From the NCBI GenBank assembly GCA_964035545.1, contig OZ037767.1, positions 23,576,628 to 23,640,627 on the forward strand: DNA of 64,000 nucleotides, written 5' to 3'. The stretch is from Bugula neritina. Lineage: Eukaryota > Animalia > Bryozoa. The position numbers and the translations under genes were made by a program. The number at the start of each line of letters is the position of its first letter. The stretch's first letter is position 1. Of this stretch, positions 2,661 to 63,621 are shown in pieces. Below the pieces are notes generated by a model that saw only the letters and a program-made list of their open reading frames with translations, ran no database searches and was not told the origin of the DNA.

Positions 2661-5600
2661 ATGATAGCTAAACTGCAGATATTTTGTGCAATTTGGATTA
2701 TATGTGCCCGGTGTACTGGAGCATACTTTGTCAACATGTGAGTACAGAATTTACTATTATTATAAAATGAGAAGTCATTTCAATGTATTGCTTACAGGGA
2801 GCATGAAAGGATGGCTATATTTGTTATAGCCAAAGTATTGTAAATATGTAGTACATGTGAGGATTGGGAGTTTTCTCATCTGACAGATGGGCGAATGAGT
2901 CATCTGACGGATAACTCATCTCTCATCTGTCAGGTGTCGGTGATTCATTTTCTCACTTGTCAGGTGATTCATCACTCATGTTGTACTAAAATTTACTTCA
3001 CGTGCATATAAAACATCTCACTCTAGCAGTCTGTATGCACATAGTGTCATACATACAAATCAAAGTCTAAAAGTCGATTACAATTACATATCACAATCTG
3101 CTGAATGCAAGAGTGCTTCAAGCTTGTTTTGTTTGTTTATGGTAGAGAAACAAAATCAAGTTTTTTACTAACAGTTATTTACTCTTTGCTATTGCTATAT
3201 TATGTCTGTGAGTTTGTGAGCATCATGGAAGCAGAACTCTGGTTTCTCTGTAGTTTGAGTAAGCATTTGCCATTACAAATCTGCCTCAGCTGTGTATTTC
3301 TCTCTCAATAAATGATGTTTAAAAAAACTAATACATAAGTGAGTAAGATTAGTTTATTTGCTCCTTCATTGAGATTTTTTGCCGCAGGCATCCTGATGTG
3401 GAGAAACTACAAAAGGATTATGGACTTTTTGATCTCCAATCTGTTGATTTGTGCCAAAAAGCTCTTAATTGCAGCCGAAATCTTACAAACAATCAAATTA
3501 TAAGAATTCAAGAAGATAGATATCAGCCTGGTTCTTATTTTCTAATGTATTTCGGGTTTATACTGAAATACACACCCGGAGAGCCTATGGAACTGTTTCT
3601 TGGTCATCCAGATCAACAACAAATATACAAATATCAAACTGGAAATTCTTTAGTGGCTGAAGCTTCTATGATTTTAGATATGGTACAATATAATAGGACA
3701 AAGTATGCACTTAGTGACAACTTGAATAACTGTGTGAAAGAGTACGACTCCGAGACTGACATGTTTACCCCTCTCATTGGTGCTTGTGCCTCAGCCAGCA
3801 CTCCTATTGGACGTCTTTCTTCTGACCAAGATATACCTGGTCTCTCTAACTTCCTGCAAGGAGTTCGTGATATTGAATTGGTGGAATTTGACAACTACTT
3901 TATTCTCTGTGATGACGACTATGGTCAGATCTTTACCTATGATGTGAGCACAGGTCGAGTAAAGCTCTTTCTTCAGAAGGCAGACGAATTCACCATCTCC
4001 CGTCCTACATTCTTGCTGTTGGATACACAGCAAAAACATGTCTATGTAGCTCACAGCACTGGATTATCAGAAGTAGAGTTACTGAGTCGTAAAGTAACAG
4101 CTCTAATTGTTGAGCCTACCTGGCACACACCACTTGAGTCACTCTCATGGCTCATCTCTAATGAAGTTTTAGTGGCTACCAACCCACAGGGACAGTCACT
4201 AGTACTTATAGATCTGAAAAGAGGACTTCACATGCCCGTGTGTGCTGGTAAGATAACTCTAATGTGTTTTGGCAGGCGATCTACATTAATAGCTGTCACT
4301 TTGATTTTAATCAATAGACAATATAAATAAACCTTCATTTATTTGAATTGCCTACAATAAAATTATAAGTAGTATTTAATATGAAATGACCTGGCTTTTT
4401 GTCATGCTAGTTGTAAAGGTCTACTGCAAATTCGACTCAAAACTGTGAATATGATTTAGTCAATGGTAGATCACCTGGTGTAATTTATTATTTTATTTAA
4501 AAGTAAATAACTGAAAAACAGTTTTTGATTACTACTACATCTATGTATATGGATAAATAAATATTCAATTTTAATGAAATTACTAGCCCGTAAGGATAAA
4601 TTAATTTTTTCAGTTATATAAGCTTCCTGTACCATCTTATTAATGTCAGACGACATCACCTTTCTAATCAATTGTTATTGTAATATTTTATGTTCTAGTG
4701 AAAGGAGCAGAATACGAGAATGCTACGGAGACTGGACCAATAGGAAGTTGTAAGCTGAGTCACCCGCAGGCAGTTTGTGTGACCAATGACACTATGTATG
4801 TTGTGGCAAATAGCGAATCCATTTCAACACAACCAGGAAACAATTTATTTGAGATGAAAGTTTACGAATGGCCATGTCCCCATTGCCCCGTAGAGCTTTC
4901 TCTCGCTAACTTGAAAATAAATAACTTAAATTACTCATCATACCCTCCCAAAGTAGTTGAATTCATTGTTGAGGACCAATATGTTCCGGGACAATTCTAC
5001 TATAACCGTGACTCTGTAATACTCAAGTCAACTGCAGACGGCAAAGTTGAACATTTTGTGGGAAGATATTTTGACGACTTCACTACTAGATACAAACCTG
5101 GAAATTCTACTACTGCTGAATTCTCTCGGCATATTTTAGGTTTGGCCCAATCTGATCTAGCAACCTTCTTTATCGCTGACTATCGGAATAATTGTGTCAG
5201 AAAGTTTGATTTACAGAGCGACTATGTTAGTCAGTTCATTGGCACATGCCGAAAAGACGACAATTCTGAAACCCTTTTACCGGGACACTTGTATTCACCA
5301 GATTATGACTTCCTTTCTGGCGTCATGCAGATCTTGTATCTGAAACAACGGGGTTGTCTGCTCATGATTGATCTACACGAATACATAACTGTGTATAGCT
5401 TTGCTACAGGAAATGTGTCATTACTTAGTGGAGAGACTTCGCGGCTTCCTGTTCAACTGCCACGAGGAATGTTGGCTAACAGTGATGAGTCTCAGTTGTA
5501 TGTGACTGAACGGTTCCAACACTTGTCAAAGATAGATCTGGAGACTTATGAAGTCACGTTGCTAATTGGGCAAACAGCGAATCCTTTCGCTACTGGGAAA

Positions 5601-60817: not shown

Positions 60818-63621
60818 TTAATAACGGTGGAAGGTTTTGATGCATTTTCGTTCATCGTACAGGGGCTGACATCTCAGGATTTGATCACCTTGTTGCTGGT
60901 CCCAATCTAAAACAATAATTATTTTATTTACGTTGGTTGGTTTAAATAAAACTGACATTAAAATATCAAATATTTATGCATAGCCTAATTCTAATAGAAA
61001 AATGGATAAATCTCAGCCAATTGAAAATAATTGTTAGAACACAAAAAACTAGTTAATTGCAGACTTGAACTTGAAAATATTCCTGACAACGATCATTACA
61101 TACATATATATATACATATATATATATATATACATATATATATATATATGTATATATATATATATATATGTAGTTTCTATAATTAAAAATGAATCAAAAG
61201 AACTCAATATTTCGAAAAATAGAGTATTTATATTTGGTACTAATACAATTTTGGATATAAAAATAAACTTAGATCTTCATTCTATTGACTAGAATGAAGA
61301 TCTAAGTTTATTTTTATATCCAAAATTGTATTAGTACCAAATGTATATATATATATATATATATATATATATATATATATATATATATATATATATATAT
61401 ATATATATATATATATATATATATATATATATATATATATATATATATATATATATATATATATATATATATATATATATATATATATTTGGAGAGAGAA
61501 CTCACCAATACTTCTATTTGCAGGTTCGAAATGGACTTTAGGAATGTTCTCTACAGGCTCTCGCGTGTACGAACATTCTCCAGTCTCTAACAGATTACTT
61601 AAAGATTTAAGTATATCTGTAAATGAGGGCCTTTCTTTGGGGTTTTCTATCCAGCATCGCTTCATCAAATCATAGCTACAGCAATGTGACACAAATTTTT
61701 ACTAGCTCATTTATTACCTAGAAAATTGAACTTGCATTACAAATCAATTTGAGTTTAGTACAGAACGTCTAAAACATACACAACAGGAAGACAGTAGTTG
61801 GGCTGGTGTAGCCTAAGACCACTTTCCAAGTGATATTTCATATTCCATGCATCTACATCAGGGTATGGCTGGCTGCCTCGAGTAAACAACTCCCACATCA
61901 AAACTCCATACGACCACTGTAATCACAACACCTTTATGTCATAAAACTGTTGGTTAAAATATTTTCTGGAAAACATTGTGTAGTGCTAAGTTTACAAAGT
62001 GGTCACAATGATGTATTGGTTATTGCGCCTGCTTGTAAGCAGGAGGTCTGTGGTTTGAATTTCAGTGGGGGAAAAGTTGTACGCATTGGAGTGTTCAAGT
62101 CATTAGGATAATGTTTTGAAGTTAAATAACTCATTTCTCTGTTGATATAATATTCGATATATTGCATAAATTTTTTTCAGGGCAAGCCGAAACTGTATAC
62201 TACTAATGGCAGCAGTCTACTGTGCACGAATTTCATGTGTTGAGATTGCTGAACGACAAGTGTGAATATTTTCTGTTATCATTACTCAAATGGCTAGCTT
62301 ATGTAGCGAGCCCATTTTTCTTTAGTGCTACAAATTATACATGTTAAAAATGCTAAATGATTAAGCATTTTCAGCGTGTATATTCAGTATGCAGTAGACA
62401 CCTTTTTCTACCTGCGTTGCAAATTTCCGTCGCACCGTGTGGCACTACGCCTACAGCTTTGCGGGCTATTCCATGTCAGCTTGTCATTTAAATAAAAAGA
62501 ACACACACTCATGTTAGCTGATGACACATGCTGACTTACGACGTCACTTTCTGTGCTAAACTTTCCATCTCTCAAACTTTCTACAGCTAACCACTTGACA
62601 GGAATAGCGGTATTGCTTTGCTCATCCCGTCTGTAATAATCGATGCTGTCTTTGGACAAACCAAAATCGGCTATCTTCACAATGTACTTGTCGCTAACCC
62701 TGAAAGTAAGCAGAGGGTATACGCTGACTTGAAATGCTTCGCAAGATGAGTCATTTTGAATATTCACCATTCTGAAATATGCTTTAATAGAAAGAAAACT
62801 CTGCAAATCTGCTTAACCATCAACCATCCACTGTTCAGTGTCAACATGCAAAACAAATCATAGGACCATTGCCATTAAACCAAATAAAAAAACGAAAGTT
62901 GACAAGCGCAAACACGACACACCACACAAACATTCTGGTCACACACAAAAATTAAAAGTGATACTCACAGACAGTTTCTAGCTGCAAGGTCTCTGTGAAT
63001 AAACCTGTTTTTTGATAAGTATTCCATGCCACAGGCAACCTGCTTAGCAAAACTCAATAAATATTTTGTAGAAAATTTCTAAAAAAAGCAAAAGAATGTG
63101 ACTTTAAATAACCACTGCATACTATAGTCTGACACAATGCTAAAAATATTGACAGACAATGGTATGGTATGCATGCTAATACATTCAGCTTATATACTGC
63201 ATATAGTCTAAGGTGGTAAGTGAGGTGAATGACATTATGCATTGCCATCAAATAATTTAAAGCAGGGCAACATTAACAAACTATCAAAATTTCCACAAAC
63301 TTGTAAAATTTGCCAACAAAAATCAATAAGTGGACACCACATATTAAAAGTTGCAAGTTATGAAATTGCAAAATTCAGGGAACTAAAACTTCAAATTGAT
63401 TCTTTTAAGTTTGATCGTTAGCAACATTGTACGTACCGAAGGCCTTCTTTTGAGAAGTGATTTACGGTCTCCATTTTTCATGTAAGGAAGCACAACCTGA
63501 GGCGTATGTAAGGCTGGAAAACTCACACCAAGTGTTTCTAAAACATTGGCATGTTTGAAATTTTTCACGATAGCAGCTTCTTCTAGAAACTTCTCTACCA
63601 TTGCTATTGTTGGCTTCAAAT
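60818..63621 (-). CDS. Gene E (partial; 5' part beyond the window): kinase and tail exons of another MET/RON-like paralog
   Basis: Exons 63621-63437, 63078-62969, 62699-62540, 61916-61780, 61675-61506 and a probable last exon 60906-60818. Motifs [65 protein letters not shown]. Closest to gene B. The last exon is less certain. Confidence 0.85.
61232..61342. repeat. Perfect inverted repeat, 53-bp arms and 5-nt loop
   Basis: 61232-61284 is the exact reverse complement of 61290-61342, with loop TTGAC. Abuts a (TA)n tract. Confidence 0.95.
61343..61488. repeat. (TA)n microsatellite
   Basis: Direct inspection; a second interrupted tract lies at 61098-61170. Confidence 0.98.
62001..62072 (+). pseudogene. 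tRNA-like relic or SINE head (Thr-TGT-like anticodon arm)
   Basis: D-arm-like TGATGTATTGGTTA, anticodon arm CCTG-CTTGTAAG-CAGG, T-arm-like GGTTTGAATTTC. The acceptor stem pairs poorly. Confidence 0.4.

Follow-up and report, generated by a model that had tools for sequence, protein, structure and literature searches.

Decoy receptors encoded by genes of their own have a precedent among receptor tyrosine kinases in the insect proteins SDR and DR2 (PMC7253209). The known lophotrochozoan Met and Met-LP receptors all carry a Sema-PSI head, and NHL domains are nowhere mentioned in the Met/Met-LP paper (PMC6374515). A locus of the bryozoan Bugula neritina that can be set beside both systems is described here, part of which lies in a 64-kb stretch of scaffold C3 (the window, to which positions given without a scaffold or contig name refer). 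The receptor cluster exceeds the window, spanning about 130 kb of the scaffold, and comprises four receptors (A, B, F and G) and three soluble genes (C, D and H) in tandem. It contains a real, undescribed-looking receptor variant, in which a head of NHL propellers and Sushi stands on a MET-type body, together with expressed soluble paralogs. The soluble products are read, tentatively and with a probability of about 0.45, as traps or competitors that would tune this NHL-headed MET-like receptor in a growth or contact pathway.

The likeness to SDR and DR2 is that a separate gene for a kinase-less ectodomain arose from receptor tyrosine kinase duplication, more than once. C and D are separate genes with a signal peptide and neither membrane helix nor kinase, as is H on prediction, and C and D are transcribed and conserved in their truncated form (spliced joints; ratio of nonsynonymous to synonymous divergence, dN/dS, 0.24-0.31). 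However, the receptor family is a different one, the copies lie clustered with their parents and exchange sequence, and the head of C and D has been remodelled, so that decoy action would be argued for them by likeness.

Gene models were built by hand from splice sites, with frames and phases checked by script; database searches were run per exon, and the joined spliced models were used locally for frame checks and substitution counts. Reading frames and splice sites are intact in all seven genes. Among named database proteins, the nearest are hypothetical proteins of B. neritina. An earlier note on this DNA had given the order A> <B C> <D <E, which these models bear out, and had called A and B full receptor tyrosine kinases. 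Gene A (2661-13637, + strand; 1439 amino acids) and gene B (16686-35246, - strand; 1495 amino acids) are indeed stop-free models of 18 exons each, with GT-AG introns and matching phases, and their kinases keep all motifs, including GxGxFG, VA[VI]K, the alphaC Glu and the activation-loop YY. Both encode, in order, a signal peptide, NHL propeller 1, NHL propeller 2, Sushi, an IPT-type stalk, a membrane helix and a MET-type kinase. A, which has an orthologue in GCA_010799875.2 and in SRA contigs, is a divergent paralog (about 51% amino-acid identity to B); B is 89-92% identical to F and G. To the right of the window come first about 28 kb of relics, scrambled and frameshifted, then a Cupin_8 gene, and then three further intact genes: the full receptors F (+) and G (-) and the ectodomain-only H (-). 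All close genomic copies of the IPT exon fall within this single stretch.

It is in the head that these receptors depart from MET. Exon 3 of B (31993-33150, -) encodes the closing blade of propeller 1 and five blades of NHL propeller 2, as judged from an AlphaFold model and fold matches; exon 4 (31704-31880, -), with a weak TEN_NHL match (E 0.085), would supply the sixth blade. Exon 5 (31329-31513, -) is a Sushi/CCP domain where MET has PSI (Pfam Sushi E 2.7e-6 in B, above cut-off; E 3.2e-5 in the A copy). Elsewhere in the ectodomain exons Pfam gave weak NHL, TEN_NHL and TIG matches, and no Sema match was obtained on the propeller exons or in this locus. The AlphaFold model of B propeller 2, made from a 65-sequence alignment, has five four-stranded blades at a predicted local distance difference test score of 91.7, and it matches best to NHL domains, those of SOQ1, NHLRC2 and teneurins (Foldseek E 1e-11 to 1e-8; VIA-align Z 23.6-19.4), with no Sema domain in the top 50 of either structure search. 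Furthermore, searches of the ESM Atlas by features and by shape returned NHL families only. The N-terminal place of the Sema propeller of MET and RON is therefore taken by NHL, and that of the PSI domain after it by Sushi. The same six-bladed NHL fold is found in teneurin, NHLRC2 and SOQ1 (Z 19-24, root-mean-square deviation 2.6-3.8), whereas sequence identity to them is 14-19% and none of those propellers is joined to an IPT stalk and tyrosine kinase. A genome-wide search for Sema gave three weak matches, none near a MET-like kinase exon, at the low sensitivity of exon-wise searching, by which a canonical MET may have been missed. The searched literature, the coverage of which was incomplete, yielded no account of an NHL-Sushi-IPT ectodomain on a receptor tyrosine kinase. 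Distantly related NHL propellers (25-30% identity) occur as a dozen single exons on scaffold C2 (24.67-24.85 Mb; L014-L025), where they form a clade apart from the kinase-linked propellers.

Below the head, the resemblance to MET is clear in the kinase. For B kinase exons 13-18 (16686-20565, -), exons 14, 16 and 17 each had their best per-domain PDB match in MET: all 39 matches to exon 14 at E<=1e-9 were MET, exon 17 scored 59 bits to MET, 53 to RON and 37 to EGFR, and in exon 16 MET was tied with ROS1. From these exon-wise matches the kinase is assigned to the MET type. The stalk has about three Ig-like units by exon layout, compared with four IPT/TIG units in the MET/RON family; its first IPT half-exon gave TIG below cut-off (E 0.009-0.05) and weak plexin-A1 and MET matches, by exon-wise search. 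The label 'MET-like' given in the earlier note suits the kinase and, more tentatively, the stalk, and fails for the head, which is NHL plus Sushi rather than Sema-PSI. Set against MET/RON, Met and Met-LP as a whole, the receptors share a kinase closest to theirs in the PDB, the activation-loop tyrosine pair, an IPT-type stalk (with weak best matches to plexin-A1 and MET) and a single membrane pass; they differ in that one or two NHL propellers and Sushi replace Sema-PSI, and in the tandem array of receptors and soluble genes. They probably signal like MET, with C-terminal tyrosines that are presumably not in MET's docking motif. Since Sema is absent, the ligand would not be HGF-like, and activation of the HGF/MSP type appears unlikely from sequence. 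Purifying selection on the signalling genes is strong, with dN/dS of 0.06-0.11 among the B, F and G kinases (all dN/dS values were obtained by a counting method) and dN of 0.03-0.05 in the receptors' propellers. More kinase exons, with 55-65% identity to B exon 16, are present on C5 (16.62-16.71 Mb, four in tandem), C2 (14.12 and 14.59 Mb) and C3 (24.33 Mb).

This combination is not confined to B. neritina. In a contig from a distant, more GC-rich animal, the version present has a single propeller, and its Sushi, IPT, membrane and kinase exons keep the same boundaries; the two-propeller layout is also found on other marine contigs. Because the same architecture occurs in a distant animal and on marine contigs, the receptor type is considered old and prone to tandem copies; a MET body can evidently accept an unrelated head and persist across distant species. 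The contig of the distant animal carries two tandem kinase genes (L060:1513-17251; ENA ERZ4903317), and it is the complete one that combines one NHL propeller with Sushi, IPT exons and a membrane helix.

Separate genes for soluble ectodomains beside the signalling receptors, as proposed in the earlier note, are found in C and D. Gene C (41722-47194, +) and its inverted duplicate D (48492-56254, -; 79% amino-acid identity) each have 10 exons encoding 681 amino acids, in spliced models that RNA joints support (one for C, more for D). Each retains one propeller, Sushi and part of the IPT stalk and is without a membrane helix: fusion of the first part of exon 2 with the body of exon 3 has deleted propeller 1, and the other exons are as in B until homology stops in the intron after the exon ending DPVIE. 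There, each gene has a private terminal exon, which in C (47150-47194, +) consists of 14 codons and a stop in phase 0, with AATAAA about 260 nt downstream, and which has a homologue in D (48492-48536, -). The two stop exons are alike in length (45 nt) and in the codon at which the stop falls; each follows a strong acceptor in the correct phase, and AATAAA comes 240-280 nt further on. Exon 1 of both genes encodes a hydrophobic leader, judged by eye. The view of C and D as intact secreted forms accordingly stands as far as the 681-amino-acid frames are concerned, and secretion itself is predicted from the leader and the missing membrane helix.

Only three copies of the stop exon exist genome-wide, all in the window, which rules out a common repeat. 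The third (39399-39443, +, with its 3' flank), identified by homology to those of C and D, is an orphan and probably a remnant of a lost secreted gene. A single recent deletion of both 3' halves of a tail-to-tail receptor pair is ruled out by the homologous stop exon in both C and D. As this exon is common to the two genes, the soluble form predates their duplication.

Transcription was assessed in four public runs from four studies, in which exons are covered and most introns are empty. The runs were listed as RNA by guess, and the presence of GT..AG joints makes them safely RNA. A spliced joint (41784-42644) into a C-specific exon, linking C exons 1 and 2, is present in runs X1 and X10. A joint from 46378, the exon-9 donor, into the stop exon is present in X3 and X10 with D-type first letters; it was seen for D-type letters only, and C's own last junction is not among the joints observed. 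At the same donor X2 shows the receptor-type continuation, with the B-type junction of exons 10 and 11 seen in this run as a loose end. Run X10 uses a shifted, in-frame acceptor of D exon 9 that belongs to the lineage of the JGI contig L053. Some X1 contigs run into intron 9; read-through of this intron as the end of C and D was replaced by the shared stop exon and its splice joint. Both the C and the D type are thus transcribed, and the lack of transcription that the earlier note had named as counting against its idea was not observed.

The soluble genes have also been kept under constraint. Between C and D, dN/dS is 0.31 over 627 codons (dS 0.35), a value earned in the soluble form because the stop exon was gained before the duplication. 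C is intact in two lineages, and comparison with its orthologue in the second gives dN/dS of 0.24 at dS of about 0.2. Since they are under purifying selection and present in a second lineage, C and D are not assembly artefacts.

This constraint followed a phase of faster change. In the propeller-2 tree, C and D nest inside the B/F/G/H clade (100/100) on a stem of 0.42, compared with 0.01-0.04, along which the amount of amino-acid change became about three times as high, both in strands and in loops. In the top-face loops, assigned here from the strand order of the AlphaFold model, the ratio of nonsynonymous to synonymous differences per site (pN/pS) between B and C is 0.8-1.0. In the same loops C and its orthologue differ at pN 0.06 and pS 0.27, which indicates that constraint returned. 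By domain, dN/dS is below 1 in essentially all intact pairs (one 62-codon Sushi value reaches 1.09), and the sole loop value above 1 involves a broken copy of D.

Sequence has moved between members of the cluster. The DNA of A and B is 40-65% identical over most of its length and 82-95% identical in three patches, and identical runs of up to 159 nt join various gene pairs; gene conversion is therefore indicated. Between lineages, exon 12 of F (stalk and membrane) shows 27 amino-acid-changing and 10 silent sites against L057:16170-16383 (dN/dS about 1), which may reflect conversion from a G-like copy or relaxed constraint on the stalk, the other intact exons being different; exon 3 of F is frameshifted in GCA_010799875.2, through a real change or an assembly error, and dN/dS of that exon and of the total was discarded.

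Gene H illustrates another route to solubility. Its membrane-exon acceptor has been lost to a dispersed repeat, and a cryptic acceptor is predicted from the DNA to bring in an in-frame stop ahead of the helix. With about 90% identity to the B ectodomain and a B-H dN/dS of 0.19, H would be a second, independent origin of the soluble form. A SINE-like (short interspersed element-like) repeat with 3637 candidate genomic matches lies at 16460-16670, and the repeat that took the place of the H acceptor is similar-looking.

The fifth gene of the earlier note, E, does not fare as well. It consists of kinase exons 14-18 only (61506-63621, -), with HRD and DFG kept, a 2-amino-acid deletion in the activation loop and the normal stop lost. 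A propeller relic disrupted by frameshift and stop precedes it at a distance of about 0.5 kb. As far as G, its strand yielded no exon for a leader, a membrane helix or the glycine loop and lysine (exon 13), and the dN/dS of E against B, F and G is 0.40-0.43, compared with 0.08-0.12 among those three over the same exons. E is best described on its sequence as a fragment of a broken gene. A receptor with an altered, attenuated kinase is ruled out by the lack of upstream exons on its strand, and with it the attenuated member that had been ascribed to the cluster.

Relics are more numerous than the two or more orphan exons first noticed, with at least three in the window: the acceptor region of a kinase exon 15 (38560-38684, -; by homology), the orphan stop exon and a membrane exon (exon 12; 57760-58033, -) with a mutated acceptor, a stop and no hydrophobic helix. 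The graveyard of receptor fragments beyond the window, on both strands of C3 at about 23.641-23.662 Mb (L041-L043), contains two blocks of exons 13-15 and a leader exon, besides IPT exons and parts of propellers; many of these fragments are frameshifted or interrupted by stops. Together with the broken D copy in another lineage and H cut by a repeat, it shows the birth-and-death evolution that had been suggested. The locus records two births of soluble receptor genes along separate routes (a new stop exon; a repeat on a membrane exon) as well as deaths, the process that underlies decoy receptors. The Cupin_8 gene lies inside the cluster, between the relics and F, in both assemblies (C3 about 23.663-23.669 Mb; L057:762-4676).

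On the reading preferred here, A, B, F and G would go back to a MET-type receptor of which the IPT stalk, membrane helix and kinase persist beneath an NHL-propeller and Sushi head. A ligand on the propeller would cluster the kinases, the activation-loop tyrosine pair would be phosphorylated, and a conserved C-terminal tyrosine cluster would recruit adaptors. Local duplication, inversion, deletion and gene conversion would then have produced ectodomain-only genes twice: in C and D by loss of propeller 1 and gain of the private stop exon before their duplication, followed by transcription and conservation, and in H by loss of the membrane exon to repeat insertion. The soluble products would most likely modulate the same pathway extracellularly. 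H, so close to the B ectodomain, could be a straightforward ligand trap; C and D, after a burst of divergence and renewed conservation of their propeller, could be traps or competitors of altered specificity. The pathway is more probably one of growth, budding or contact between cells than a polymorphic self/non-self lock. The result is a short, testable list of genes for signalling in a phylum with little molecular knowledge of colony growth or kin recognition.

Several points weigh against this reading. The propeller that remains in C and D is only 62-68% identical to that of B, and its change is concentrated in the assigned top-face loops (pN 0.35, against 0.12-0.17 elsewhere). With propeller 1 lost and the rest diverged, C and D may bind no ligand of the receptors. 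D may be dispensable, as its copy in L053 has a nonsense codon and two 1-nt deletions, real or due to assembly error. In addition, the splice model of H is a prediction, and secretion of C, D and H is deduced from their sequences.

The head changes in C and D could instead reflect innate-immune or symbiont sensing, in which the receptors would detect microbial or damage ligands and the soluble members would be opsonins or decoys of an old, fixed, slow-turnover repertoire. This is judged unlikely, while having several observations on its side: birth-and-death evolution with a conversion mosaic, C/D propeller loops that were near neutral or briefly adaptive on the stem, and the many more NHL-propeller exons elsewhere in the genome. 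The C-specific exon, moreover, appears in two RNA runs and is absent from two with B-type contigs, where contigs show presence only. However, no region is clearly above dN/dS of 1 among the intact genes, the stem rise extends to the strands, and the propellers of the signalling receptors are strongly conserved.

A new role for C and D, rather than a trap, would fit the loss of one propeller, the alteration of the other and the return of purifying selection better. It is quite unlikely, in our estimate, that the NHL-on-MET receptor class budded its own secreted partners, C and D being ligands or specificity-shifting co-receptors that bind propeller to propeller; if true, this would be a new ligand-receptor system, through which zooids might recognise one another, larvae their kin, or host and symbiont each other. 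A ligand-receptor pair from one family, with C and D as agonists or co-receptors through propeller-propeller contacts in the manner of semaphorins and plexins, is likewise improbable. Teneurins, whose NHL domains are among the closest folds, owe their homophilic binding specificity to these domains (PMC5851990); yet a shared fold shows no function, and no dimerising module is evident in C and D. Furthermore, the receptor type is far older than C and D and must therefore have had another ligand.

The soluble copies might also be by-products of an unstable locus, transcribed and with little or no present function. The broken D copy, the orphan stop exon, the 28 kb of relics and the severed H are what such a locus would leave behind. 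For C this is already unlikely in view of its intact frame and low dN/dS in two lineages, and the C-D ratio accrued after stop-exon gain adds to the case, so that the idea is distinctly improbable overall.

An allorecognition or kin-recognition locus of the Alr or Fu-HC type, close to the immune or self/non-self reading of the earlier note, is held to be very improbable. The animal is colonial and kin-biased settlement has been reported (PMC10078279), the propeller is teneurin-like, and membrane and soluble forms are clustered with pseudogenes and exchange sequence, as in the Hydractinia Alr complex (bioRxiv 2022.03.25.485889) and in KIR/LILR. In contrast to those systems, there are no Ig domains here, and the receptors have their own kinase rather than tails with immunoreceptor tyrosine-based activation or inhibition motifs (ITAM/ITIM). 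Positive selection on the outer domain was not detected by the counting method, and the extreme allelic diversity of Hydractinia Alr2, with 180 alleles in 239 colonies, has not been seen so far: C and A match across the samples checked. Over the most diverged half of C, a JGI DNA contig and RNA contigs from 2016 and 2020 studies have the same 48 differences from the window in 735 nt; the listed C variants are identical across DNA and RNA contigs (19 of 19), and two JGI samples are free of mismatches along 4 kb of C. For A, three SRA samples agree completely (100%) and show 98.4% identity to GCA_010799875.2. In the genes, the independent samples are 10-12% different from the window, and flanking DNA, at about 80-89% identity, differs as much or more. 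The gene differences are thus attributed to lineage divergence in a cryptic species complex, the name B. neritina covering at least three cryptic species (PMC11480708). The allele sample comprises few colonies, some possibly from the same colony or population (X1 may be the JGI DNA colony), and weakens the recognition idea without killing it. The low polymorphism and purifying selection that the earlier note had set as evidence against its own reading are what this small data set contains; the claim of a recognition system is left unproven, and such alleles as could be compared point the other way.

Mis-assembled haplotypes, suggested by the 85-92% protein identity among B, F, G and H, deserve next to no credence, given ectodomain synonymous distances of about 0.2-0.5, inverted orientations, different introns, a curated HiFi assembly at 132x (tzBugNeri2.1; PMC11480708), and independent recurrence of the C/D pair with both stop exons (L053) and of A, and F beside its Cupin_8 neighbour (GCA_010799875.2).

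Mobile sequences account for some of the remaining features of the window. A 136-codon open frame at 59131-59538 (+), with no Pfam match, resembles what we take to be a GIY-YIG endonuclease relic of a Penelope-type element. Intron 8 of B contains a 5.26-kb element (24745-30001) with TTAA flanks, 28-nt imperfect terminal inverted repeats and no reading frame above 80 codons. The genome has at least 40 copies at 98-100% identity, out of about 120 candidates, and on C8 two copies are arranged head to tail; by these features the element is classed as a young, non-autonomous DNA transposon.

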